From the NCBI GenBank assembly GCA_964036045.1, contig OZ038378.1, positions 29,388,001-29,452,000 on the forward strand: DNA of 64,000 bases. Direction: 5' to 3'. This DNA comes from Eutreptiella sp. 'Long Island Sound 2002' (Eukaryota; Protista; Euglenida). Shown here piece by piece: positions 890 through 57,590 of the stretch; within the stretch, counting starts at the first letter, position 1, and each line of letters starts with the position of its first letter. The position numbers were made by a program, and so were the translations under genes. The notes beneath the pieces were generated by a model. It did not search any database. It had not been told where the DNA came from and saw only the letters and a program-made list of their open reading frames with translations.

Positions 890-3800
890 GCGCAGAGTGC
901 CTCCGACTTGGGGATAGGGATGGCCCAAGGCGGAGCTCGATCTTTCTCTGTGCTTAGGGCCATATGCCCCCTAATCCCTCCGAGTGGGGAATGTTGACGG
1001 CCCTTGGCGGAGCTCTCTCCAAATGTCTAGCGGCAGATACACAACCCATGGTGGAGCTCTTTCACCATGCTCGGTGCCGGATACCCCCGAAACCCTCCGA
1101 GTGCGGGATAGGGACGTCCCGTGGCGGAGCTCCCTCCTTGTGCCTTCTGTTGAATACGCGTGACTCCCACCGAGTGGGGGATAGGGACGGCGGGTGGTGG
1201 ACCTCTTTCCTCGTGCCCATCGCCGCAACACCATGCGATCCTCTAATTGCCCATCGCCGCAACACCATGCGATCCTCTAATTGCGGGATAGGGATAACCC
1301 ATGGTGCGGCTGTCTCCCCACGCGCAGCTTTGGCTACACCCGACTCTCTCAAGTGGGGCATATCGAAGGCCCGTAGCAGAGCTCTCACCTCATGCCCGGT
1401 GCGGAATATAGCCGAGTGCCTCCGTGTGGCGGATAGGGACGGCCCTTGGCGGCGCTCTTTCCCCATGGCCAATGCCGTAGACCTTTGAGACCCTCCGGAT
1501 GTGAGATACGGACGACCCATGGTGGAGCTCTCTCCCCATGCCCAGCGCCGGATGCACCCGAGGCCCTCTCAATGTGGGGTAGGGACAACCCTTGGCGGAC
1601 TCTTCTTCCCAGGCCGAATGCTTGGTAGACCCGAGTCCCTCGGAGTGGGACATACAAATCGCTTGTGGCGGCGCTGTCTCCTCCATGCCTAGCGCCCAAT
1701 AGGCCCTACGTCCCTTCGATTGGTGGATACGGACGGCTTGTCGCAGTGCCTTCTCCCCATGCCTAGTGCCGGATACCCCCGGAACCCCCCGACTTGGACA
1801 GAGGGATGGCGTGTCGCGGTGCCCTTTCCCCATGCCCAGTGCCGGATACCCCGGGATCCCTCCGACTTGGAGAGAGGGTTGGTGTATCGGGGAGCTCTCA
1901 CCCCATGCCAAGCGCCCGACACCCCTGCGTCCCTCCAAGTGGGGATAGGGACGGCCGGCAGCGGTGCCCAACGGCGAATAATCATGAATCCCTCTTAGTG
2001 AGGGATATGGAGACACCCGAGTGCCTACGCGTGGAGGATAGGGACGGCCCGTGACGGAGCTCTCTCCTCATGTTGAGTGTTGGATACCCTTTAGTTTCTC
2101 TCGGTGCCCGATAGCCACGCCCCATGCCAAGCAGTGCTTTCCACCAAGTCCCTCCAAGTCCAGGATAGTGACGGCCCGTGGCGATGCTCTCTCCCCATGC
2201 CCTGTGCCGAATACCACTGAGTCCCTGTGATTGGGGGATAAGGACGGCTTGCGGTGAAGCTTTTGCCCCGTGCCCAGCGCTGGATACAACCAACTCCCTC
2301 CGAGTGGACGATATGGACGGCTCGTGGCGAAGCTCTCTACCCATGTCGAGCACCACATGTCCTAGAGTCCCTTCAAGTCGGGGACATGGATGGCCCATCA
2401 CGGAGGTCGCCCCTCATGCCCAAGGCCGGATACCCCTGAGTCCCTCCGAAGGCATGATAGGGATGGCCCACGGCGGAGCTCTCTCCCCATGGCCAGCGCC
2501 GGATACACCCAAGCCCCTCTCAGTCTGGGATGGTGGCGGCCCTTGGCGGACATTTCTTCCCATGCGCCGTGATGGATACACCCAAGTTCCTCCGATTGAG
2601 GCATAGGGACGGTCTGTGATGGTGCTCTCTCCCCATACCCCGTGCTGGATACCCCCGAGTCCCTCCAAGTGCGGGATAGCAATGGCCCTTGGCAAAGCTC
2701 TTTTCCAAAGCCCACGTGGATACACGTGAGTTCCTCCGATAGGGGGATAAAGACCCGCCGTGTAGGTGCTCTCTCCTCCCATGCCTAGCGGCGGATACGC
2801 CGGAGTCCGTTGTAGTGGGGGATAGGGACCGCCCGTCGTGGTGCCTTGTCCCCATGCCCAGTGCCAGATACCCCCGGGTCCCTCTGACTTGGAGAGAGAG
2901 GGTGGTCTGTCGGGGAGCTCTCACCCATGCGCGCTTGCCACCCCCGCGTCCCTTTGAGTGGGGATAGGGACAGCCCGCAGCGGAGCTCTTTCCCTTTGCC
3001 GGGCGCCGGATACTCCTATCTACCCTAAGTGAGTGATAGGGAAGGCTTATGGCGGAGCTTTCTCCTCATGCCTAGCCCCGGATGCACTCAGGTCCCTGTG
3101 AGATGGGGATATGGAAGGCCTATGGCAGAGCTCTCACCCCATGCTTGGTGTGGGATACCCCGAGGTCTCTCCAAGTGGGGGATAGGGATGACCCTTGGGG
3201 GAGGTCTTTGATCATACCTATCATTGCATACACCCGAGTGCCTCCGATTTGGGGATAGGGACAGCCCGTGGCGGAGCTCTCTCCCCTTGCCTAGCGCTAG
3301 ATACTCGAGAGTCCCTCCCGGCGGGGGATAGGGATTGCCCAAAGCGAGCTCTTTCCCCATGCCAAGTGCCGGGTATACCCGAGACCCTCTAAGTGTGGGG
3401 CAGGGATGGCCCTTGGGGGAGCTCTCTCCCCATTCGTAGCGCCGGATGCCCCCGAGCCCCTTAGAGTGGGGGATAGGGATGGTCTGTGGTGGAGCTCTTT
3501 CTCCATGACGGACGCTCGATACACACAAGGCCCTCTGAGTGGCGGCTAGGGACGTCTTGTGGCTGAGGTCCGTCCCCATGCCCAGTGCATGATAGCCCCA
3601 AGGCCCTTTGTGTTGGGGATAGGGACCGCCCATGGCGGAGCTCCTGCCCCTTGTCTAGCGCCGCATACACCCGAGTTCCTCCAAGTGCGGGATAGGGACA
3701 GCCCTTGGCGGAGCTCTTTCCCCATGCCCAACACTAGATACCACCCATTCCTTCTAAGTGGGGGATAGGAATGGCCTGTGGTGGAGCTCTTTCCCTGTCC

Positions 3801-3995
3801 TCAGCCCGGGACTCCCAGTCCCTTACGAGTGGGGGATACGGACGGCCCGTGGTGGAGCTCTTTCCCCGTCCTCAGCCCCGGACTCCCAGTCCCTCTAAGT
3901 GGGGGATAGGGACGGGCTGTGGCGGAGCTCTCTCCCCATGCCCAGCGCCGGATACACCCCGAGTCCCTCCGAGTGGGGGATAGGGACGGCCCGCC
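890..3995. repeat. ~73-bp tandem satellite, about 42 degenerate copies
   Basis: Recurrent unit CCCGAGTCCCTCCGAGTGGGGGATAGGGACGGCCCGTGGCGGAGCTCTCTCCCCATGCCCAGCGCCGGATAC. The G-core recurs at 3687, 3760, 3831, 3901 and 3975 (70-74 bp spacing). Many SacI (GAGCTC) sites. Confidence 0.9.
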
Positions 3996-4009
3996 ACGTT
4001 GCTCACGTA

Positions 4010-4095
4010 GGGTATTGTATGTAGGGTGTTGTTTGTACTGGTTTTGTATGTAGTGTGTTGTATGTAGTGTGTTGTATGTAGTGTGTTGTATGCTA
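4010..4095. repeat. 14-bp minisatellite (TAGTGTGTTGTATG)n at the end of the satellite
   Basis: Three to four direct copies read directly from the sequence. Confidence 0.8.
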
Positions 4096-5284
4096 GTGTA
4101 CATAGTACTTGGATTTCATTTTGGAAGCTGTGGCTAGGTGCCGCAAGTGCGCCTCAAGCGGGTCATTAGGGTGCATGCTTTGAGCGTTGTGAGGCCCTAC
4201 CCCTTTGGTTTCCGCAATTCTGATACCCTCAAGTGCCCCAATTGTTTCATGACGCACACACTGCGTCCAGTATGCCCCCCCAATTGGATGTAATAAATCG
4301 GACAAGGTTCTGGTGGAGTTACCGATTTGGCAAACATACCAGCTCGCCGGCTGGCGGGCCAACTGTCTGGTTCATTCTTGCAATGCTCCATACCAACAAC
4401 CCCCCGCTTCTGTTTAATTGTGCACACGAGAAAGGGTTCTGTAGTCTTTAGACACGGTCAACCACATGTAGACATGGCTTGCTAGTTATAGACAATGCCG
4501 GCATGTTGTAGACGCGAAGTGCCAATATTTGGGAAGGGGGGCCCCTTCCCCCCATAACAGTCTGTGTTTATCAGTCCTCACTTCCATGTCACTCAAGCAA
4601 GCAAAGCAAGCGAGGAAGGTGCATAGTTTTAGGTCTTGAGCCAGGGGCCCCCTTCCCCCAAATGGTCCGCTTAAAGTGTTTACCCGTTTAAACATCCATG
4701 TCTCTTGAGCGAATCAGGAAGATTGAGCAAGCAAAGCAAGCGAGGAAAGTGGACCCGAAGACCATGTCTAATCTAATCTAGTGAGCTCCCCCTGCACCCC
4801 CCCTCACACCCCACCCCCTCCCAAACCAAGTCAGATGGGCCTAGATAGGGGCCCTCCACCACCAAGGATGGCCACCCCAAGGCAAAGGTGCTGCTTGGAT
4901 TGCCACACCAGTGCAAGGCCAAATGGAAGAAATAGGGGATGCTAGTCACGGTCTCTGGGATGCCAGTCACGGTCTCCTGGATAGCTTGACTTCCACACGG
5001 CAGGGTGGGGGTCTCCTGCATGCTCGGCTCTGTCTCACGGAGGTATGCGTGGCCCAGAACCTGGTGTCTTAGCTCATTGAACTATGGCTGTGTATGAGTG
5101 GGATAGCCAAATCGGATGGTCCATGGAATTCATTATCATGAGAGGTCTTGTGGACTAGCACGGGTTACCCCTCAGAGTGCCCTAACATGCTTAGAGCTTG
5201 TGGATGCTGAAGAGGAGTATGTGGCCGGTGGGTCATCTGGTACACAAGCTGCCCCATTAACACCCTGCTCGCAAGGCATCCACC

Positions 5285-6565
5285 TTGGCAGTTATCAATG
5301 GAGCCCTTGCCCCGTTAGCGGCAACTGTGCGCTCAAAGAGCAAGTTGGTAAACAATGTTCACCTAATGTGTAGTGACGGTCCCTGCCCCGATGCCTCACG
5401 AATCCGAAGAGGCAGCCGCAACGCAGTGAGATGCGTCGTGGCGCTTGCCGGGTACTCGGTACAAGGACTTCATCCACACCCATACCCATACCCCTCCTAA
5501 ATGGCCTGAACGCTGGTAACAGCCAAGAAGAAACCAATAGTTGTGCTGCAAAAGGCGAGGTGGCCCGAAGAGGTGTTTGGAGACTAGTGTGTGTTGTGCC
5601 CTCGCTGTGAGCTGTGCGTAGGTTTGTCCACATTGGGGTTCGACTGTTGGGTTTCCCTCAAGTAGTGTGTGTGTGTGTGTGTGTGTTTGTGTGTCTGTGT
5701 GTGTGTGTGTTTGACCTGGGAGAAAATAATCGGTGCCGAGCAGTGGGCACTGTGTGGGTCCGTCAGGGTTGTATCCCCATGGGCGGCCCTTTCAGTGCCC
5801 AAGCTGCGGACCTCCACAGTTTGTGGAGGGTGTACCGGCATAGGCACTTATTCTGCAGGTTGGGGTCTCTGATTGTCTCGGATGCTGGGTTTCCAAACTG
5901 GGTGGGAAGGCACACTGTGGCAATGGTGCAGTTCAGGGACAATAAACTCGTGGCCATGGACCCCCCACCCCCCGCCACGAGTTTGCAGACGTGGTAGATT
6001 TGGTGCGGAGCATACTCCAAGAGGCATGGAGCCTCCTTGTGGTATGTGATTGTATCGCGGACACACAGGTCACATGCACTGGAGCCTGCTGTGGTCCCGT
6101 GTGTAAAGCCATGGGTGTGGTCCTAGTCCGATCGAGAACACGTTCAGGTATGGCTTTCATTGAACCCTCAAGTGTCACTAGCCTCCCCCCCCCCTTGCTG
6201 AGCCGGCACTCCAAATACACTGGGTACTTGGGGTCTATATCACGGGGGTCCTGAAGAATGGCCTTCCTTTTTCTGCCGCATGGGCCTCCCAGCTTATCAG
6301 CGCTGCCGCATGGCTCAATGTTGCCATGCTTTCTGGATATGGAAGGGGGGAAGCGATGCGGGCCATGCATAAAGGTGTGTACCGTGCGTATGCTATGACG
6401 CCGCATGATGTACAAGCGACAGTAAAAGCAGTGCATAGCCTGAGTTACCACCTCCCCACGTCCAGAGCCCGCGCGGCTCATGTGCTGGCTGGTTGGCTCC
6501 GTAAACACGCGTACCGGCTTGAGACTCAATATAGTAGCTGGTACCAGGCGCGGTCCGGGGGATAA
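5285..6565 (+). mobile_element. Degenerate Penelope-like retroelement reverse transcriptase
   Basis: GCIPMGGPFSAQAADL (~5767-5815) resembles the PLE G.PMGSP.S motif. QFRDN(K)LVA (~5929-5955) sits at the YxDD position. Thumb-like region follows (AWLNVAMLSGY...HLP). Frameshifted and interrupted by (GT)n at ~5664-5710. Confidence 0.65.
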
Positions 6566-7306
6566 CGGGGGTCTGGGACCGAGATTTTGCAGGCAGATTA
6601 TGCTTCATTGCAGGATTGGACGATGACAGGGCACTGGGGAAGGCGTGTGTGTGACGCCCCGGTCACGGGACGGTCTTGTTGCTCTGCATGTATCTCTCCT
6701 CCCCCTGAACAGAGATTTGGGTAAATCGTGGGTATGTCACTCGCCCGGGGCTGTAAGAGTTCATGGTTCTGCTGACATGAGGAAGTCCTGCCCTGGGACC
6801 GTGGTAGTAACAAGAACGGCAGAACCGGGCTCTTCTGTGGTGGTGCGAGGGATGGGCAGGGTCCTGACTCTCCCTGATACTCGGGTTTGGAGGGGCTGGG
6901 CAGCCTTGTTTTTTTGCCTGCAGGCCTCTGGCTGAGATCGCTGCCAGAGGCTGTACCCGACTTCAGGATGGAGGAATTGGACCGACTGCCTCTGCTCTTC
7001 GCACTACAGAAAGGCGCCTAGTGCAGGCGGGACATGACTGTGCTTTTGTTCTGCTTTGCACCTGACGAGATCTAGTACACTCAGGCCACCTTTTGCTGTG
7101 CCCTGTTTGTTGCGTCGGCCATGTGTGTGTGTGTGTGCGCGCGCGCTTGCGTGCAACGTCTGGCCGACCCCCTCCCCCTTGTTGTGACCTCGCCTCATGC
7201 TGCTTCGCAGCCCTGCGCTTGGTAAAATTGGGGTTCGGTGCCCTTGGAACTTGAGCCTGCCTCTGAATGGGGGCGTCACAGGGTCTGTTACGCTCTCTCA
7301 ATACAG

Positions 7307-7420
7307 GACCCTTTGCGCACTACACCTCTTCTAGTGCGCTCTGGCTGTCGTTGCTGTTGCTCGTTGTTGCCACAGCAGCTCGCCTGCTACCCTGGCGTTC
7401 GACTGCGGCGCTGAGCAACA
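7307..7420 (+). CDS. Host TraB/GumN-like gene, first recoverable exon (hydrophobic stop-transfer-like segment)
   Basis: ctctctcaatacAG acceptor and GTgagc donor; phase 1-1; encodes GPFAHYTSSSALWLSLLLLVVATAARLLPWRSTAALS and joins the 8362 exon in frame. An alternative acceptor at 7281 is possible. Confidence 0.6.
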
Positions 7421-8361
7421 GTGAGCTTTCATTGCCAGACTGGACCATGGCTGCCTTTGTGGGCCAGAATGGTGTGTATTGTGGATATGCGCCCATGTGC
7501 ATGCGGTTGTGCACAAGTCACTGAACCGACAGCCGATCCCTATGGTCCACCAGTGCAGCTTGCTGGCCTTGCTGTGTTTTGCACATATGACTGGCCACTG
7601 GACGGTGGAATACATTGCAATTGGGCCACAATGCCGACTCTCGCCCGAATGCGCTGAGGCACCACTTAGGCAGATGCCAAACCATCAGACACACAGCACA
7701 AGGTGCCCCCACAAACATGCTGGGCAGACCACCAAACGAGATTTGTAGTTGCATTCCAGGTCTGGTCTAGAGCAAAAACAGATGCACTAGGGTGGGCCCA
7801 TTTTGTGAGGTCTAGCCCTGCGTAGGGCTGGCTGTGGGCGCGGTGAACGCTGCAGATCGGGGAGAGCGGACAAATTGATGGAAGATGCAGCAGATCCAGA
7901 ACGGACAAAATGTGTGGCTCAATGTGAACAAGAATGGGGAATCAGCCCATGGGACACCTCATGGCAAGCGAATTCGAAGGAAGTGGGATTGGATAACTTC
8001 GAAGGGCTGTTACACCATTTTCCTTCGATGCGGTGGTGCATGACCGCCATGCTGTAGAATGGCTCTGTGTTATGGGGAATGACGTGCTTTGATCAAGAAA
8101 GTAGACATGTGCAGGCGTTGGAGTCCATGGTTTTTTTCCTGGGCTGTTCAGTAGTCTTCCCCTGGCTTCTCAGCTGAAATGCTCTCCCACGCCCTGCTGT
8201 GGAGTGCAATGTGATGTGCCACAGTGCATTGCGCTTCAATTGGGGCGTGTGAAGTCGGTATCGCCCCGTTATCAATTGTTGTTGACGTGTCCAATGATGC
8301 ATTTGCACACATTTGGCCGCATTCTCAGTCTCTGATGCCCCTGTGCTCCGGTTGTCCGCAG

Positions 8362-19364: not shown

Positions 19365-20180
19365 ATTATTCGAAGTGCACCCATTTGGCAAATGGACCCC
19401 AGAGGCACGTCAGTGCCAACTGATTGACACGGAGAGATATTCTTTTCTCTACATGGCCCACTTGTAGATACATGGGGGTCTGGGTACACATTTTACCACT
19501 ATATTTCCCTTCAAGAAACACTACCTTTTCTGCGGTTGGCTGTATAACCACTTGTTCCACGTTGTGTAACAGGGTGTGCAACCCCGGCGCACTTGTGTCA
19601 CCAGCACTTAAATGTGTAACTGGACGTGTAACGGTGACACGTTTTGTGCAACCACCCCCATCCCACCACACAAACACCACTTGTTGTCCCCCCCCCCCCC
19701 CTTGTGACCGCATGTGTAACCGGTGACACATTTCGTGTACCCGCCCCTCCCACCACAGAAACAGAGACAATGCACAACACCAAGGAAGGGACATCAACCT
19801 TCTACTTACCGTGCGCTTTGAGAGGTTTTTTTTTGTGCCAATCGCCGAAACATTCAGATTTATGGAGTGGCACTCCACAGGCGGAGCGCACAAACAAGGT
19901 GCGCCCACAACAATGGACACCAAAGCAATGTGTAACCGCTGCTGTAACCGGTGACACATATGTGTAACTGCCCTGATGGAAGAAAAAATGAGTAAACATG
20001 CACACCATGGGGTTCGCCCGGGGTGACACATGTGTCGGCCCAAAAAAATACCTGAAACAAAAAACCCTTCTTGACCTACACGAAGTGGGTGTGTCAGCGG
20101 CAGGGGCATTTGCAAAATGCCTCTATTCAACTCAACTCAAAAATTTGCAGGTGTGGCCCAAAATTTGATGTGTAACCCCG
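19365..20180. mobile_element. MITE-like element with TGTAACCGGTGACACA internal repeats
   Basis: CATTTGGCAAATG (~19383) and CATTTGCAAAATG (~20107) near-inverted ends, with five or more tgtaac...gtgacac motifs between them. Confidence 0.4.
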
Positions 20181-21342
20181 GTAGAGAAAGGAATATGCAC
20201 GGCACACACCGGCTGCTCTGGGTGCTTGTCAACGTCTTGTGCAGTGGCATCCGACTGTCTCAAAGAGTAGCCGGATTCGACTGATCGCAAGGGACAGCCT
20301 TTAGAGCAGTGGTTCTGAGCCCTCTTTTCACTGAGAATTGAACCTGCCCCCTTCCTCCTGCTCAGCCGAGCCTTGATGATCTGCAAGTCCTGCAAACAAG
20401 CCGTCCCAGGTTCAATTCCCACTCTTCACAGTATTATTGAGGCTCCTCTCACACTGCCTGCCCACTGGATATTGCTGTACAGGTGCATCTTCCTGGTTTC
20501 CCCTGATGCGCTTGTTGATGCCACCCCCCCACACGTGCCCCGCAGGGGCTTGAGGATAGGGAGTAGCTTCTGACAAACGCAGTTTCAACACTTGCACATC
20601 AGGTGTGCACTGTGTGTCTGGTGGCTTGGCTCGGACCTCCTGCATTATGACTGGGCCATGCGCCTCTGACGTGTGGTCTGCTTTTGTTGGTGAGCCACTG
20701 ACTGCGTAGGGCCTCCCGTGCCGCTAGTCAGGCCATGAAGTGACAAGTGGCGCTGTCAGTGTGCCCAGGTGGGTATGGGTGCCGCATGGCAATCTATTGA
20801 GGCGACCCAGTCAGGGCCGGGATGGACGGGATGGGAGTATGCTGAGCTAATGCGATCGGGAGCGCTCCCAGTGACCTCAAGAGGTGTTGCAGGCAGACGT
20901 GCCATTGGCGTCTGGGACATCAGACACCATCACATGGTATTCCATCGTGCTGACTGGCGCACTGAAAGCAGCTAGTTTCCTACGAAGTGCTGGTTTTGAC
21001 GGGAGCGGGGATTGCTGAGTGGCATGGCACATGGTGCGGGACTGATTCCGAACAGCACTCTCAGAACGTCTGGTCGCAGGCACATCACAGCTCCAGCGAC
21101 AGTGACCCTTGTGCTTTGTAGACACGTACCCCCCCGGGAGGGTACTGCAGCACCCCATTACCCTTTCCGTTCCCTTGCAACACCTGCTTAACCACCATCG
21201 ATTATACTTCAGCCGCCGTTGGTTACCGCCCGAAAATGGCTGCGTGTGTGACCACCCCCTTTCTTCCCTTTTGTTGCTCTTTTGAGTTCGGCGGCGCCCT
21301 GCCCGCAGCCCTCCACATGCACCCCCCTCCTCCTCCGCGCAG

Positions 21343-39471: not shown

Positions 39472-39490
39472 TTCTGAGTGTCTATTTTCG
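39472..39490 (+). other. Relic of the euglenid spliced-leader (SL) sequence
   Basis: TTCTGAGTGTCTATTTTCG versus the Euglena SL ACTTTCTGAGTGTCTATTTTTTTTCG (recalled): 17-nt exact match plus terminal CG, with a shortened T-run. Confidence 0.6.
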
Positions 39491-49949: not shown

Positions 49950-52813
49950 GGAAATGTCCAAATTGGCAGTCTAATGCCCAGGGCGTGCCCGGTCCACTGA
50001 CATGAAGCGCGACCGCTTCAAGTTCAAAGTAGGTTGATGTACGCATATGGTGGCTACAACAGGAGGTGGCGACAGCCGAACATCGTACTCGGCAATGGAG
50101 CAGTGGCAACCAACTACTCTTGTGCGGACACGGGAAATACGTCCTCCTACTAGTGGTTATGGCCTAGGGAGGGGTAAAGGTGGTTCGGACCAGATCCCTG
50201 CCACGCAAGCCTCCGCAGGCAGGCGGCAATGACCAAAAAGGCCTGCATCGTATGTAGAAAGTGCAACTACCAAGCATTCTGGAATGGCGGATAGCACAGG
50301 TGCACGAGGTAAACAATCTACCCCGCCTCCCAAATGTGACGCAAACCAATAGTGGGAGGATGCGTTGCGTTGCAGATGCCATATAGGAATTGGGCATATG
50401 TTGTGCCCAATACTATGCGGTTTCGGTGTACATGGGTTAACGAGGGGGGGACGAGCAGGGCGTAGCTGAGGAAGCCAGCCTCCCCAATTGGAGCTAGAGC
50501 CTTGAGGAGGTCAAACGGCTTCCACTTCCTGCTTATCCTCGGGATATGGAGGCAAGTCCGCCTTGGGTTCTAGGCAATACTTCTGAAGCTCGTGTGCCAC
50601 CCCATAGGACGCCATTCAGTCTACCGCATGGGCCACCCTTTTCAAAAGGTGGAGGGGGTTAAAATTCACACGCAATCACAAGTGAGCAGTCTGCATTGGA
50701 TTGTGGGCAATATGTGGCATCCATGCCTCGGTAATAGCTGCCCCCGCATACAAGGCATCCTGCAACTCAAAGGAGCGCCGCGAGTCCCCGTCTATGTCGG
50801 GCGACAGGAGGATGCCATGGTCATCACGAAAGGCGGCATTGCTACACAACTACATCATGTGGTGCCGCATTACGCAGCAATGGTCACCCGTGAACTTGTC
50901 ATATGTGACAATCACCCAGACAGGGATTACTGCAGAGGGCTCTGCAGCATGGGGGCCAAAGAAGATGACCGTGGCTGGTGTGGCCGCATGGTACCGGGCG
51001 CAAACCGGGTCCAGCCAATGCCGGGTTGCCTCAACGTCTTCACCGTTGAACGGTGTCACCGCCTCTGTGATGCATGTGGCGCAAAGACCAACGGCTCGAG
51101 TCTCACCCGAGACGCCAATAACGTCCTCCACGTGAAGTTTGTCAATGAAGAGGAGCCACTAGTGCACTCCCTCGGCATGCTTGACGATGGACGGCAGTGA
51201 TTGCACGGTGCAGGGCTCGTTGGGGACCACCGGAGGTGATCCTGCAACGGGTCACCTCCCCGTGTCATAGCTTGGTAGGTACCCAGCCTCGTTATACGCC
51301 TGCAACAGCTTGGGCCCTCCTACACCCAATGCTGCCAAGGCTGCAGCACCTCTGTCCTGCGCATGGGAGGACTGCACAGACCAGGCATCCCTCAGGTGCG
51401 CCAACACCTTCCACGGCGTCTAGCCGGGTTGCAGCAAACGGGCTGCACGGTAGCCTGCTACCGGCCGTTCATCCACGGCCAACGCTATGGCGAAAGCGTT
51501 GTTAGGCTAGCATCGCTGCCGGAACTGGTGAAGGTCCGCATAGGCGTCCCAATGCCTCCTACGCCACCCCCTTGTTGTCGTTCGCCTCATTGAGGTCGTT
51601 GACTAGCACCGCCGGAGCGATCAGGTAGTGCAGCTCGGTGGCGGTGGGCGGCATGCCAGCATCTATCCACCCCTTTGGCTTGTGCGCCCACTTGCTGGTT
51701 CCGAGGTCCAAGCAGGAGAGGGAGGGATCATATGTGCCCATGATCTCATCCCCACATACTCGGCCTCAACACCCTAGCCAGAAAAATCTCCCGGAAAGGC
51801 GAAAGTGCCACCGGGGTTGTTCGTAGGTGCTGCGCATGATGGGGTACATCCTCCCAAGCTAAGGCATGGTGGTCACTTGCATGGGAAGGACACTGGGGCA
51901 ATTTTGGCCCCTGGGGCAATTTTGGCCCCTGTCAAGGCGGGACCAAATTGCAATTTGGCGTCCAGCCCCTCATTCCTTTCATGTGGCTGAAGGTCGGGCC
52001 TCCGGTTGGCAATGGCCATAGTGGTTGCTGACCACGCTGCCCCCGCCGGTGGTGGCCCACAGAAGCGACCTTTCGTTCACGCTAATCATCATGGCCGGTA
52101 GGGTTGTGGAGCCCGCAGGGGCGACCCGAAGGAAAAACTCCGGCACCCACTTCCCGTACTACAGCCAGTCTTTGTGTTGCTCCCCCTTGCAGTGGACGTC
52201 CGCGAAAGCCTTGCTAGTAGTGCCCGTGCTAAGGGGAAAATGGTGGCCGGAGGCGGCTTACCCCGACTCCCCGGCCCGTAAGATGCTACAGTCATTCAGG
52301 GAATCATTGTCACATGTCGACCCGGATTATGTGTGGTCCATTCCCGGTGACAAGGGGGGGAGGCCAAGGGCTATGATGTTGATACGCGTGTTGAGCTTTT
52401 TTGGGAGGCACAGGGGCAACATATTACATTTAGGGGCTATGACATGCACATCGGTAGTGCTGCCAACACGCCTATCGACGGGCAACACATCAAGGTCTGC
52501 AAACCGTCTAGCCTACATTTACCTGTGTTCTAGGATCCCAGCAACCATTTGTTTTCCCTTGGCAAACGTGGAATGGATGACCCTTTTTCTCTATTCTTCG
52601 CTTGCCTTGCAAGCCGGCCCAAAGTGCACCCTTCTTGCTGTCTTTCGCTTCCACTCTCTGGGAGGGGGGGGGGGGCTAGTGTAACAGTCCCGCACTCCAA
52701 CGGCTTTTCACAGGGGCAGCCTTTATGTTCGGAATGCCACAGAGTTTCACATTGCGGGGGGGGGGGGGGGGGGCTAGTGTGGCAAAGGGCAACAGCGAAA
52801 TTGGTACAGGAGG
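49950..52813 (-). mobile_element. Degenerate retroelement-like coding sequence (family unassigned); host of the piggyBac insertion
   Basis: Fragmented protein-like frames (RRFADLDVLPVDRRVG..., GEDVEATRHWLD). A homologous ATRYWLD motif recurs at ~56880 on the other side of the piggyBac. Confidence 0.3.
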
Positions 52814-52819
52814 AATATT

Positions 52820-55800
52820 CCTTTGTCTATGGCTCTCGGGAGCCGATTTTGTCGTGCATGTCTCCGCCGAGGTTTGGTTGGCTGTAGGGGTTTTTGAGGG
52901 CGAGGAACGCACTAGAATTGTCCGTTTTTTGTAATTACATCATTTTTGGGTGTAGAGCCACTTTGCTGACCGTGGCTCCGCTGTCATACATGTCCTACAT
53001 GTCCTGCATGACCCCATACCAGTAGGTAAAAACGTCGCGCATGTCCCGCGCGTGCCGCGCGCTTCTCACGTCTGGCTCCACAACTGTCCCTGGCGCCAAT
53101 TACTTTGTGAAGTATGTTTTACGTGTTTTGCAGCACTTGTGCACGCCTTGCAATGCATGTGTGAGGCCCATGGCCGCCCGCCAAGCAAGCTCCCCACTGG
53201 GCAGACAAGGCAGGAGAAGTTCACCGGATCGGCGCACCATGTCCGATCCATCGAGATCGTGAAGAGCTTCTTCACCAACGAGTACGGGTACTCGCTGGGC
53301 ACGTTCGTGCACCATTACAAGAACTGCTGCGCACAGCTGAAGGCGGCAACTGGGGCTGAAGGTATGCGTGTGCACTACGTTCAGACTGCTGTGCATGGAG
53401 GCTTTCCTTGCGTCCCCGGGGACCGTCGCTCGTGTTCCGCGCGTCCAATTCGCTGCGCACGTCGTCTCCGCATGTGTCCCTGGAGACATGCATGTCGTTG
53501 ACCGCGTGTTTCGTGTCCTGCAGTGCGTCAAGATCTGGGCCTCGCCGCGACCATGCTGAGCCGCGCTGAGCCGCGGACGATCCAAGTTGTGCTGTCCTGT
53601 GGAACGAAGAACTGCAGTTCGGTCACGAAGGCAGTGGAGCATTTCCAGACGCCGTACCCAACCGCCGGGGCAGAGGGCGCCGCAAAGAGTATTCTCCGTC
53701 GTGTTGGCGATTGCGTTAGTGGTTGCGCGGAGGCCGGGGAATTCGAGGCGGAGGACCCAAAGCCGAAACCCGGGGGTATCCCGCTGGCAAGCCTTTCTGG
53801 ACGAGAGGCTCGGGGAGTCCTCGGCACTGGAGGCCGGCCTCGAGGGCCGCGGTCGGAGATGTCGGACGTCTCAGGCTTCCACGTCAAGGATGTGATGGAC
53901 ATGGATCTGGACGAGTTGATCCAGAAGTACAATCGAACCGTGCGGGCAGCTGGACTGTTGAGGTACATGCTCGAGGCCGACCACGGGCTGACTGAGGAGC
54001 CGGAGCAGAAGACGTGGACTCTGGTGCGGCAGGCAGAGTACCAAGAATTTCAAGCATGGAAGCGCCACAAGGTGTGGTGCTGTTTGCGTGATGCACGTGA
54101 TACACGCTGTCTCTTGCACTGTCCCTAGCGGCCTCCTTGTTTGTTCTGCGCGCTCCAGACGTTGCGCGTGCTGTCTCCGGATTCGGCTCTGGTGACAATA
54201 ACTGTGTTCGCCGCGCTTAATGTGCGTTCCCTGTCACAGGCCATGCCCCCGCAGCTGCCGCCGCCGCAATATCCCCCGCAGTACCCGATGCCGTACCAAC
54301 CGCCGCATTACGGGCAAAAGTATGGGCAGTATGGGCAGCGGTACAGCCAGATGTACGGGCAGCACCCGCAGTACCAGGATGAGGAGTGGGAAGAACCGGG
54401 TATGAAGGCGGAGTGGGAGCCGGGTCGCATCCCGGCACCACCGCCGCAATACTACCAGCAGCACCACCCACCACCACCGCCGCCCCAGCCACAGCAGCTG
54501 CACCCACCGCCACCACCGCCCCAAGAACAGCTCCAACAACCGCCAACCCCGTCGCCGCAAGATGCCCCCGTGGTGCCTGAGGAAGCCGGCCCGATGGACG
54601 ACCTGCCGATCAAGCAGGAGGAGGTGGAAGAACCAAAGATGGACACTGGCGAACCAGGTCATAGGTGCCTGCGCGCGTCCTATTCGTTCCGCGTGTTGTC
54701 TCCCGATGTGTCCCTGGCGCCATCGCTTCGTGTTCCATACGTTTTGCACGCTCTTCGCGCCGTCCCCCGGCATGTCCTTGGTGACCGCCTGCATGTGCTG
54801 CATGTCCTGCGTGTTCTCCACAACTGCTGAGGACGACCCCGACACGTGGGATGCCAGCAACGTGGACATGCAGAACGTGTCTCTAGGCCCCAGGGGCAAT
54901 GGTAGAGGCAGCACTGTACACACGTACGACATGTGCAATGTGTCGTACGTGTGCTACAGCACTAGCACCTGCATCCCACTCTGCAGGTACAATGATTTCC
55001 TAATCTGCTTGGGAATGGTACGTCCTATGCAGGTAGACGGGATCTGGGACAAGCGCCACCTTGCGTACAACAAGGATATGGCGTCCCTACTCCCCCGGGA
55101 AATCTACTACCGTCTACAACGGTTATTACGGACCGATGTGACGGACTTGATTGAGGAGTGCAACGCAACATGGAGCGCTGCATGGGAAATTGGAGGGGCG
55201 GTTTGTGGGGACGAGGCTGTCGTTCCCCATAGTGATGGCCGATGCCTGGGGCTACGGCAATACATTGCCCGTAAGCCCCATTCTACGGGCATCAAATTAT
55301 ACGTCCTCGCGGACAATGGGGGGGGGTTACGTGTTCGACGTCTACCTCTACACGGGGCGTCGCGGCAAGGTCCGCCGCTTTGGGTCATGTTGCGGCAAGT
55401 ACGACGCTAAGGGTATCATGCGTCTATGGGCGAGGATGATCCCACAGTCCACCGTCCTTTGTGCGGACAGCTTATTCGGAAGTCATGGGCTTGCCAAGGA
55501 ATTCGCGGCCCAACGTCGGCCGTTTCTCATGCTTTCAAAGCATGATAAGCGAGATGCCGGCCTTACAAGGGCGGCCGCCCTTACCCACGAGGGCGACATG
55601 GCACGGGCAATTGTGGCCGACAAGAACTATGAACTTGCCGTGTACAAGAACCCGAAGGTGGGGCACAAACCCCCACGCTTGGTCCTCTTCCTTACCAATT
55701 GTTGGTATGGGGAGGAGGTGCCCAAAGACCGGAGAGGGAACCCTCTCCCTCCGGTGGTAGCGTGCTACCGGGAGTTCTCCCGTGCCGTAGATGGGGCCAA

Positions 55801-56515
55801 CCAAATGGCGCTGCAAATGCGCCAACTGGGGAGGCAAATGACCTGGAGCAACGTTGTGCTTGCGTTCATGGTGCGGTACGCGGCCGGCAATGCCTTTGCC
55901 ACCGCCAAGGCATTGGGATTGGTGGACGACAAGACCACCATGTGGGAATTCCAATGGGACATCCTCAAGCAGCGGTACTTTAGCGGCGCGGAGTTCAACA
56001 ACACAACGCCAACCGCTGCGGTCCCTACGGTGCATGCACCGAAGCGCTTTGCGAGCCGCCTCTTGTGCACGCATTGCCGCAACGGGAGTACGCGTTGGGC
56101 GTATGGAGCGTGCGGGAAGCACATGCACATCAAGTGCTTCGGGGACGCCCACGACGTGTAGTCTGTCATGGGCGTGGTGGGGCGGAACGAGACGGTCATG
56201 GAGGCGGAGCCTCTGCCATCCGTACCCATGGGACCATTGCGAACCCTGGTGGAACAACCGCGTAGGCTGGATACCCAACCGTGAGGACGCCCCCCCCCCC
56301 CCAACAGCGGTACCTTGTTCCACAACACGTCGTGCGCGTCGTACGCGTTGGGCTGTATTCCACGCGTGGCTCTCCATGTGTCCCCGGAGCCACACCAATT
56401 CGTTCGGCGCGTTCCGGACGTTGTGCGCGTCGTAGAACCTTTTTTCCAATTCGTCCAGAACGCCTAGAACATTTCATGTGTCTCTCGTCACAAATGATGT
56501 CCCCGTAGACAAAGG
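52820..56515 (+). mobile_element. Full-length piggyBac-family DNA transposon (3696 bp) with AATATT/ATAT target site
   Basis: 13-bp TIRs CCTTTGTCTATGG (52820-52832) / CCGTAGACAAAGG (56503-56515), 1 mismatch. AATATT on both flanks (52814-52819 and 56516-56521). Asymmetric internal IR ACATCATTT (52937) / AAATGATGT (56492). Encodes a piggyBac transposase. Confidence 0.9.
53157..56161 (+). pseudogene. Intron-containing piggyBac transposase (~835 aa reconstructed; DDE_Tnp_1_7-like core plus C-terminal Cys-rich domain), probably inactivated
   Basis: Exons 53157-53361, 53524-54071, 54240-54657 and 54824-56161 are phase-consistent. Catalytic GDEAVV, CADSLFG and AVDGANQM; RQYIARKPHSTGIKLYVLAD; CRD CTHC...(Y)GAC..H.H..CF..H. 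Lesions: CAA instead of CAG at the intron-3 acceptor, +1 G in a G9 run (55318-55326), and a probable C-to-Y change in the CRD. The start codon is inferred. Confidence 0.85.
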
Positions 56516-56521
56516 AATATT

Positions 56522-57590
56522 GGGCATGCGAATTCGTGAATCCGGACTTAGAGGTGGGGCTATCGGTGCTACACCCTGATTCCCTGAACACGTGTGCCAC
56601 AAAGCTGCAGCCCACGACGGGTGCGGCACCGGTGTTGGCGGGCAGGGTGGTCGCACATGATGGCGTTGCTCTGCTGCCGCCCATGGTGCGCCGGTGTGCG
56701 GGGGAGGTTACCTATTGTGTCCCAAGGTGTGGTAAGACAATGCCATTAGAGTAGATGTGTTTCCACATTGCCTTCAACGTGCACACAAGGGATCTGTAGG
56801 CCCCTAGCTGCGGATTTTGTAGGGACTCTGGCTCTGTGCTTGGCATGCGTAAGGCAAAGGGCAGGGAACCGCAAGTCGAGCCAATATCGTGTCGCAACAA
56901 GATCTTTTGTAAAATTAGCATGAAGGCAGCTAGGAAGTATTCAGTGGAGGTGTCCCCTTGGGAATGCCGTATGACTGCTTGCGGGTGGCATTGGCGCCAA
57001 AACATGTGGCACCACTGCCAGATGCACTATTCCAGCTTTCCCGTTGCTGAGGAGCGGTTTGCCGCTTAGGATTGGAGGATGGGGGGGCTCATTGCTTTTG
57101 AGGAGGAGGAGGCCACATTTTGCGAGGAGAAACGAAAGTTGTGATGGACGGATAAGGGGGTTCGGGCAAGGCGCAAAAAGGTGCGGCAGTCCATTAGTGC
57201 TGCCCTCCTAACCCTCCGCCCAAAGCACCAGAATCCTAACCCTAGTCAGCGGCCTAACGCGGATGACCCTTCGGAGGCAAGGTCACGGCAAGGGCATAGA
57301 GATCTGCATCGGATTGAGCACGGGGATGCAGACATCCTTCCCAACGGGTCTGATAGCTCCGCACCTGATTCCAATTCAAATTCAAACAGCTCCTCATCTG
57401 GCTCCACCTCCTCGGGACCGCCCGCATTGATAGCTCTCTTAGTGGCGGCATCCAAGGCGTCCCTTGCTTGCTCATAGTTCTCTACGTCGGGACGTGGGCT
57501 GTTGGTCCCAATGCCAAGCCTCCCTTCACCACCACCTATGTCTATGCGGTCAGTGCGGAGATGGGAGTCTTCCCCCACCGCCACATCCCA
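56522..57590 (-). mobile_element. Degenerate retroelement-like coding sequence (continuation or second copy of 49950-52813)
   Basis: FTKDLVATRYWLD motif and acidic ORF 57246-57584. Removing the piggyBac joins DSRIRMPNI to PPVPISLLP in frame. Confidence 0.3.

Follow-up and report, generated by a model that had tools for sequence, protein, structure and literature searches.

A Non-Autonomous piggyBac-Superfamily Element in Eutreptiella and the Evidence for ATAT as the Target of Its Family

Results

An Element with piggyBac Features Flanked by ATAT

The sequence analyzed here is a stretch of 64,000 nucleotides (nt) from the euglenid Eutreptiella sp. 'Long Island Sound 2002' (assembly GCA_964036045.1, contig OZ038378.1, positions 29,388,001 to 29,452,000 of the forward strand), referred to as the window throughout. 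It contains an element of 3,698 bp on the plus strand (52819–56516) that is closed by a 14-bp inverted repeat, TCCTTTGTCTA(T/C)GG, with the hexamer AATATT outside each end. The longest plus-strand open reading frames (ORFs) inside the element, 54562–55410 and 55151–56161, both match PF13843 (DDE_Tnp_1_7), the domain of piggyBac transposases. As described below, the element is probably a disabled member of a family that integrates at ATAT rather than at the TTAA of canonical piggyBac elements.

The left end of the element (52814–52832) reads AATATT-CCTTTGTCTATGG and the right end (56503–56521) CCGTAGACAAAGG-AATATT. A repeat finder applied to the window recovered these ends as a 19-nt inverted pair, 95% complementary, with arms 3,670 nt apart, which bears out the terminal repeats abutting AATATT on both sides that an initial annotation of this DNA had recognized. 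The left terminal inverted repeat (TCCTTTGTCTATGG; 52819–52832, plus strand) and the right one (56503–56516, minus strand; reverse complement TCCTTTGTCTACGG) differ by a single T/C mismatch over their 14 bp. The tetranucleotides ATAT at 52815–52818 and 56517–56520 are interpreted as the target-site duplication; the left ATAT has its counterpart before the terminus in most ends that were read and genome-wide. When up to three mismatches are allowed, four matches to the 16-mer ATATTCCTTTGTCTAC are present in the window, where 0.13 would be expected.

ATAT Precedes the Terminus throughout the Genome

Copies of the element and the composition of their flanks were collected as a census of exact pattern counts in the window's own genome (2.28 Gb in 2,317 contigs), each count being compared with that of the reversed pattern as a control. 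The terminus TCCTTTGTCTAYGG was found 358 times (control 39), and ATAT stood directly before it in 312 of these cases (control 0). Roughly 98% of the termini not attributable to chance therefore carry exactly ATAT, in a genome region with about 55% G+C, and the target and duplication by which canonical piggyBac-like elements are recognized, TTAA, is replaced here by ATAT at 312 of 358 termini. The base before ATAT was C in 137 cases, A in 62, and G in 24 (controls 0 each), leaving T for about 89 by difference from 312. A pyrimidine (Y) thus occupies the outer side of ATAT in 72% of the ends, giving an extended preference for Y-ATAT-R (R, purine), and the hexamer AATATT represents a 20% minority of the ATAT-flanked ends.

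Ends that were read independently gave the same picture. ATAT preceded the terminus in 36 of 38, the other two showing ATGT and ACAT, and no TTAA-flanked copy was present among them; the 38 include five ends from other families with different subterminal sequence, one of which belongs to a second element in the window described below. In all, at least five further families or subfamilies whose termini are related, that second element among them, have ATAT flanks. Insertions within (AT)n runs are frequent, and most flanks beyond the four bases are not A/T-rich. Together, the counts support a target of ATAT as a property of the lineage, beyond this single copy.

Empty Sites Contain One ATAT

Unoccupied paralogues of the insertion sites were sought, and the clearest case was provided by a full-length sister copy, L031. 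When its flanks were cut just outside the two ATATs, each had more than 30 matches at 96–97% identity, and at 33 places the two matches lay exactly 4 nt apart. The empty site predicted for L031, a 20-mer composed of 8 nt of one flank, a single ATAT, and 8 nt of the other flank, has 32 exact matches at these positions, and its reversed control has none. The net gain per insertion at the 33 paired paralogous sites is the element plus 4 nt. The host sequence of L031 (L031:858-1457 and 7582-8001; G000 C2 ~168.96 Mb) is itself repetitive and young; the repeat exceeds 1 kb in length, and 33 or more copies, 96–97% identical, are spread over many chromosomes.

A second copy, L041, lies in a satellite of 72-bp units, where six neighboring units read TC-ATAT-A and the filled unit reads TC-ATAT-[element]-ATAT-A. 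This satellite (L041:2-1679 and 6767-7501; G000 C1 ~91.85 Mb) also shows higher-order periods of 145 bp and 360 bp; its units alternate between TC-ATAT-A and CCC-TAT-A, and the transposon occupies an ATAT-bearing unit.

For the window copy, the initial annotation had predicted an empty site GGAGG-AATATT-GGGCA. At 10 or more other loci, its two flanks occur next to each other, GGAGG and GGGCA being separated by exactly 6 nt, a spacing that agrees with the prediction in length and fits one A-ATAT-T. Such 6-nt spacers lie, for example, at C13:25915704-25915709, C6:117500539-117500544, C7:61256860-61256865, and C1:95884896-95884901. The host sequence here (52200–52813 and 56522–57120) belongs to a dispersed repeat of greater age; its paralogues number about 30 and show 65–78% identity, and none of them was found within the locally examined DNA.

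Where elements of two families with the same termini abut each other, one ATAT (L032:1389-1394, G000 C14 ~54.305 Mb) or ATATAT (L034:7501-7508) lies between them. A single ATAT at such a junction is the outcome expected when an element enters the target duplication beside a copy already in place.

The Family Encodes a Divergent piggyBac Transposase

The two ORF pieces in the window matched PF13843 with 24.5 and 27.3 bits (E 2e-5 and 2.8e-6). An intact sister ORF (L032:1755-3056:-), with 434 uninterrupted codons, reached 63.4 bits and an E value of 2.9e-17 against a cut-off of 22.4. A word-based protein search returned 88 relatives, nearly all from one large ENA assembly, in families 40–96% identical to the query; a scan of metagenomes with the protein profile gave 108 pattern matches and 0 relatives. 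An alignment of 18 of the 88 relatives was used as a profile against solved structures, and it retrieved Trichoplusia ni (T. ni) piggyBac (6x67; E 1.7e-18) and piggyBat of Myotis lucifugus (9c0f; E 7.9e-14).

In this alignment, the catalytic aspartates D268, D346, and D447 of T. ni piggyBac correspond to D119, which is invariant, and to D204 and D312, which are each conserved to 90% or more. The corresponding codons in the window, all on the plus strand, are at 55210–55212 (D268), 55466–55468 (D346), and 55790–55792 (D447). A C-terminal Cys/His-rich domain is encoded at 56066–56152 (plus strand), in which C404 and C407 are invariant and C416, C419, H424, and H432 nearly so, and which aligns with the Cys-rich tails of 6x67 and 9c0f. 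Judged by its match to PF13843, its triad of aspartates (DDD), and this C-terminal domain, the protein is a divergent but clear piggyBac transposase.

The DDE_Tnp_1_7 core and the Cys-rich domain are carried by a putative main exon (~54985–56161, plus strand; stop codon 56159–56161), which is 97.5% identical to the intact sister ORF and has no premature stop, although one extra base is present at 55318. About 60 further residues, recognized from relatives, are encoded in an upstream exon 1 at positions 4138–4428 of the family reference, within a segment that the window copy lacks. Exon 1 and the main exon were searched separately, unjoined, and exon 1 alone matched no Pfam family.

The Window Copy Is an Internally Deleted Derivative

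Comparison of the window element with its own genome revealed many copies at 90–97% identity (1,737 first-look candidates), and nearly all of the 52 matches listed split the query at two points. Among themselves, the copies of the family are 91–98% alike. The full length of the family is about 6.1 kb, as in the sisters L031 (6,116 bp), L032 (6,131 bp), and L034 (6,121 bp), and roughly 300 intact family ends are present in the genome. With L031 as the reference, the window copy (52819–56516, plus strand) aligns to positions 1–348, 1782–3484, and 4463–6116 at 95–97% identity and lacks positions 349–1781 and 3485–4462. The first deletion removed 1,433 bp, and at its junction (53159–53166) the aligned blocks overlap by 8 nt of microhomology; the second removed 978 bp, transposase exon 1 among them, and its junction (54865–54870) shows 6 nt of microhomology. 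Microhomology of 6–8 nt at both junctions is as expected from abortive gap repair.

Both deletions truncate a second, upstream coding region of the family, the remnant of which spans 53159–54870 on the plus strand. It consists of long ORFs with a P/Q-rich part, and the upstream long ORFs of the family matched no Pfam family. In addition, the single extra base at 55318 (plus strand), in a G run, shifts the transposase frame. A homopolymer assembly error may account for this base, though not for the missing exon 1. Because of its two internal deletions, one of which took exon 1, and the 1-nt insertion in the G run, the window copy is, to judge from these lesions, a dead, non-autonomous derivative.

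The same internal deletion recurs at loci with different flanks in the pairs L037/L038 and L041/L042, and further copies have other deletions. Deleted derivatives that share a deletion at differently flanked loci have therefore been mobilized in trans.

The family carries an internal (AT)n microsatellite at reference position ~3930, the length of which ranges between 6 bp and over 100 bp among copies (L012:3730-3846, L041:2752-2838, L022:3661-3735). Copies with the short allele, L031 and L032, also lack the 10-nt word TCGTCGCCAA beside it. Such a microsatellite would constitute a built-in target for an ATAT-seeking family. A different transposon of about 800 bp, with ends TACTACACCCCTCTCCC... 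and ...GGGAGAGGGGTGTAGATTGGAGGA, lies within the (AT)n run of several family copies (L023:230-1040; also L005, L007, L008, L016, and L020; reference 3930/3931). It may go back either to a single nested insertion that was inherited or to several separate insertions into the microsatellite.

Subterminal and Internal Repeats

The initial annotation had described asymmetric internal inverted repeats of the kind found in T. ni piggyBac, where they are 19 bp long and are bound by the Cys-rich domain. The present comparisons do not confirm them above chance level. In a comparison of 300 x 300 nt, the only inverted subterminal word shared by the two ends is the 9-mer ACATCATTT (E 0.26), which lies close to the inner edge of the right repeat and about 105 nt inward from the left repeat. 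Both ends of the full-length sisters do contain a module of about 67 nt, but it is in direct orientation, with 72% identity, and recurs inside the element as well.

In L032, a GC-rich module of about 35–77 nt (…CCAGGGACAC…GGAGACAACGCGCG…) is found five to six times within the element (L032:4124-6325) and near both ends (subterminal copies at L032:1518-1584 and 7245-7311). It overlaps stretches that break the long ORFs and that are presumed to be introns. No repeated 11-mer inside the element reached four or more occurrences.

Discussion

A Model for Integration at ATAT

Based on these data, we estimate the probability at about 0.9 that the window element is a non-autonomous copy of a ~6.1-kb cut-and-paste family of the piggyBac superfamily whose transposase integrates at ATAT, preferably in the context Y-ATAT-R, and duplicates these 4 bp. 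The element proper would extend from the T of TCC to the A of GGA. By homology with T. ni piggyBac, the DDD active site would nick the 3' ends of the transposon, and hairpins carrying the flanking tetranucleotide would form at excision. Attack on a target ATAT with a stagger of 4 nt would then duplicate 4 bp. At the donor site, the ATAT overhangs would pair and restore a single ATAT, so that excision would be seamless; this is possible in principle because ATAT, like TTAA, is self-complementary.

The two tetranucleotides share the central TA and differ in the outer pair, T...A in TTAA being swapped to A...T in ATAT. The strictness of TTAA recognition has been attributed to hydrogen bonding within the unpaired target, where the first T contacts the last A (PMC7351741). 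The swapped outer pair is a candidate replacement for this bond, and recognition of a single-stranded target could thereby be kept.

Candidates for the residues that set the specificity come from comparison with T. ni piggyBac. At the position of its Y439-N440, the present family has an invariant Tyr-Arg pair (18 of 18 relatives), the arginine codon of which lies at 55769–55771 on the plus strand of the window; piggyBat, like T. ni piggyBac, has Tyr-Asn. Differences at two further tetranucleotide contacts of T. ni piggyBac are Ser for K290 and Lys or Ser for R275. The replacement of N440 by arginine was weighed as the probable origin of the changed target choice, a proposal that has been downgraded. 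N440 contacts the A at position -2 of the tetranucleotide (PMC7351741), which is the same in TTAA and ATAT, and the arginine is therefore a lead rather than an explanation.

Alternative Readings of the Flanks

The initial annotation had taken the insertion to be at AATATT and had noted that a 4-bp ATAT duplication could produce the same appearance in one copy. With the 6-bp palindrome as both target and duplication, the element would run from CC to GG, in agreement with the AATATT on both sides of the window copy and with the 6 nt between GGAGG and GGGCA in its paralogues. The flanks of the other copies decide against it. Of 312 ends, no more than 62 have A before ATAT, whereas C, the commonest base, is found at 137. 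The T beside CC and the A beside GG are assigned to the terminal repeat, and the apparent AATATT of the window copy is explained by an ATAT target that chanced to have an A before it and a T after it. The hexamers of L031 are unequal (CATATT on the left, AATATG on the right), and its empty sites measure 4 nt, not 6. ATAT might instead be the outermost part of the terminal repeat, with no duplication or a variable one, since it is as invariant as the repeat itself. Yet one ATAT is kept in the empty sites, both in the 32 exact matches and in the satellite units; abutting elements share one ATAT, not two; and no further duplication is found outside ATAT. The empty sites thus exclude the hexamer and the extended repeat for practical purposes, and we consider either to be extremely improbable, while the 4-bp duplication of ATAT is borne out by the single ATAT that they contain. 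Equally far-fetched is an ordinary or loose specificity in which ATAT flanks reflect biased retention or local composition. Several insertions do lie within (AT)n runs, but a near-universal ATAT in a region of ~55% G+C, outer flanks that are mostly not A/T-rich, and the lack of any TTAA-flanked copy among the 38 ends read speak against it.

A different cleavage geometry at the same target is unlikely. A stagger of 2 nt, or a blunt cut in the center of ATAT, would duplicate TA or nothing and would define the element as TTCC...GGAA or ATTCC...GGAAT; filled and empty sites would then look just as they do under a 4-bp duplication. In T. ni piggyBac, however, the positions of the two active sites in the dimer are reported to mandate a 4-bp offset (PMC7351741), and the present protein aligns over that catalytic core. 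Moreover, when the terminus is read in the 4-bp register, its xCCTTT corresponds to the CCCTTT of coral piggyBac-like elements (PMC2872659). Because of the homology to the active-site geometry of T. ni piggyBac, a 4-bp duplication would be favored over a 2-bp or blunt one.

Several points weigh against integration at ATAT with a 4-bp duplication. Since the palindrome extends into the termini (GGA-ATAT-TCC), the stagger length cannot be derived from sequence alone, and readings of 4 bp, 2 bp, and blunt cleavage predict identical filled and empty sites. The first nucleotide of the repeat is T, at a position where C is highly conserved in piggyBac-like elements (PMC5381638). For the window copy itself, the empty sites are known by their 6-nt spacing alone. 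Finally, the support is drawn from sequence: no transposition event, excision footprint, or polymorphic site has been observed.

Comparison with Known piggyBac Elements

The family resembles T. ni piggyBac (IFP2; 6x67/6x68) in its DDE_Tnp_1_7 core with the equivalents of D268, D346, and D447, its Cys-rich C-terminal domain, and its short terminal inverted repeats. In both, the net duplication is a palindromic tetranucleotide composed of A and T only. The proteins are nevertheless only remotely similar (E 4.7e-4 with a single sequence). The targets differ, ATAT against TTAA, and the repeat begins with T where that of T. ni piggyBac begins with C. The length of 6.1 kb, the introns, and the second coding region also set the present family apart. 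Asymmetric 19-bp internal repeats were not demonstrated in it, the comparisons having yielded the chance-level 9-mer and the direct ~67-nt module. piggyBat belongs to the same fold family by profile, with an aligned Cys-rich tail; its superfamily is characterized by TTAA (PMC5381638). Reviews name TTAA targeting among the general traits of the piggyBac superfamily, to which the present family belongs by its transposase although it departs from this trait.

Bouallegue et al. 2017 (PMC5381638) surveyed 157 piggyBac-like elements and found flanks other than TTAA, including ATAT, only in single sequences, ascribing these flanks to mutation. By contrast, ATAT is the rule here for about 300 ends and several families. 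The 14-bp repeat with its one mismatch falls within the range of 12–19 bp given in that survey (PMC5381638) and, in the 4-bp register, begins with T, followed by CCTTT.

The literature searched contained no ATAT-duplicating piggyBac group, no piggyBac in Euglena, and no description of piggyBacA or piggyBacX, with Repbase and Dfam outside the search and earlier cataloguing possible. Mentions of ATAT in PMC2872659, PMC4625184, PMC3627910, and PMC9004415 concern primers, a mutant end, Sola2 elements, and simple sequence. What is new here is the genome census, together with the evidence from empty sites and the exclusion of AATATT as the target.

Implications of an ATAT-Specific Lineage

TTAA targeting and footprint-free excision define piggyBac and underlie its use in genome engineering, and a structural model explains both properties through recognition of the unpaired tetranucleotide (PMC7351741). 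Hundreds of copies that use ATAT would show that this specificity can move to another self-complementary tetranucleotide of A and T. The initial annotation had envisaged a euglenid piggyBac lineage with an altered target; a specificity other than TTAA is indeed seen across the lineage, but AATATT is not its target. Whether a whole clade of euglenid piggyBac transposases (several families with 40–90% mutual identity) switched from TTAA to ATAT and from C to T at the first transposon base, with the 4-nt stagger and seamless excision retained, is a proposition to which we would give even odds. If true, such a clade-wide switch would provide a natural test of the single-stranded-target model and a source of an orthogonal seamless vector.

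The family also offers natural sequences in which determinants of specificity can be sought, among them Tyr-Arg for Tyr-Asn, Ser for K290, and T for C at the transposon tip. An ATAT-specific transposase that is still seamless would reach sites closed to piggyBac and might be used alongside it. For the host, an ATAT target would explain why insertions gather in (AT)n runs and in the flanks of existing copies. The window copy itself, as a dead derivative, has no special value in these respects.

Other Features of the Window

The window contains a second, older non-autonomous relative (19437–20196, plus strand). It is a 752-bp element at 19441–20192 with termini TCTTTTCTCTAC and TCCTTTCTCTAC, each of them next to an ATAT. 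Longer elements elsewhere contain sequences 71–87% identical to its two ends (about 200 and 270 bp), which indicates an older related family.

The Euglena spliced leader had no match in the window within 3 mismatches. The word GTTCTGAGTGTCTATTTTCG at 39472–39490 bears a tentative resemblance to the euglenid spliced leader, with a shorter T-run.

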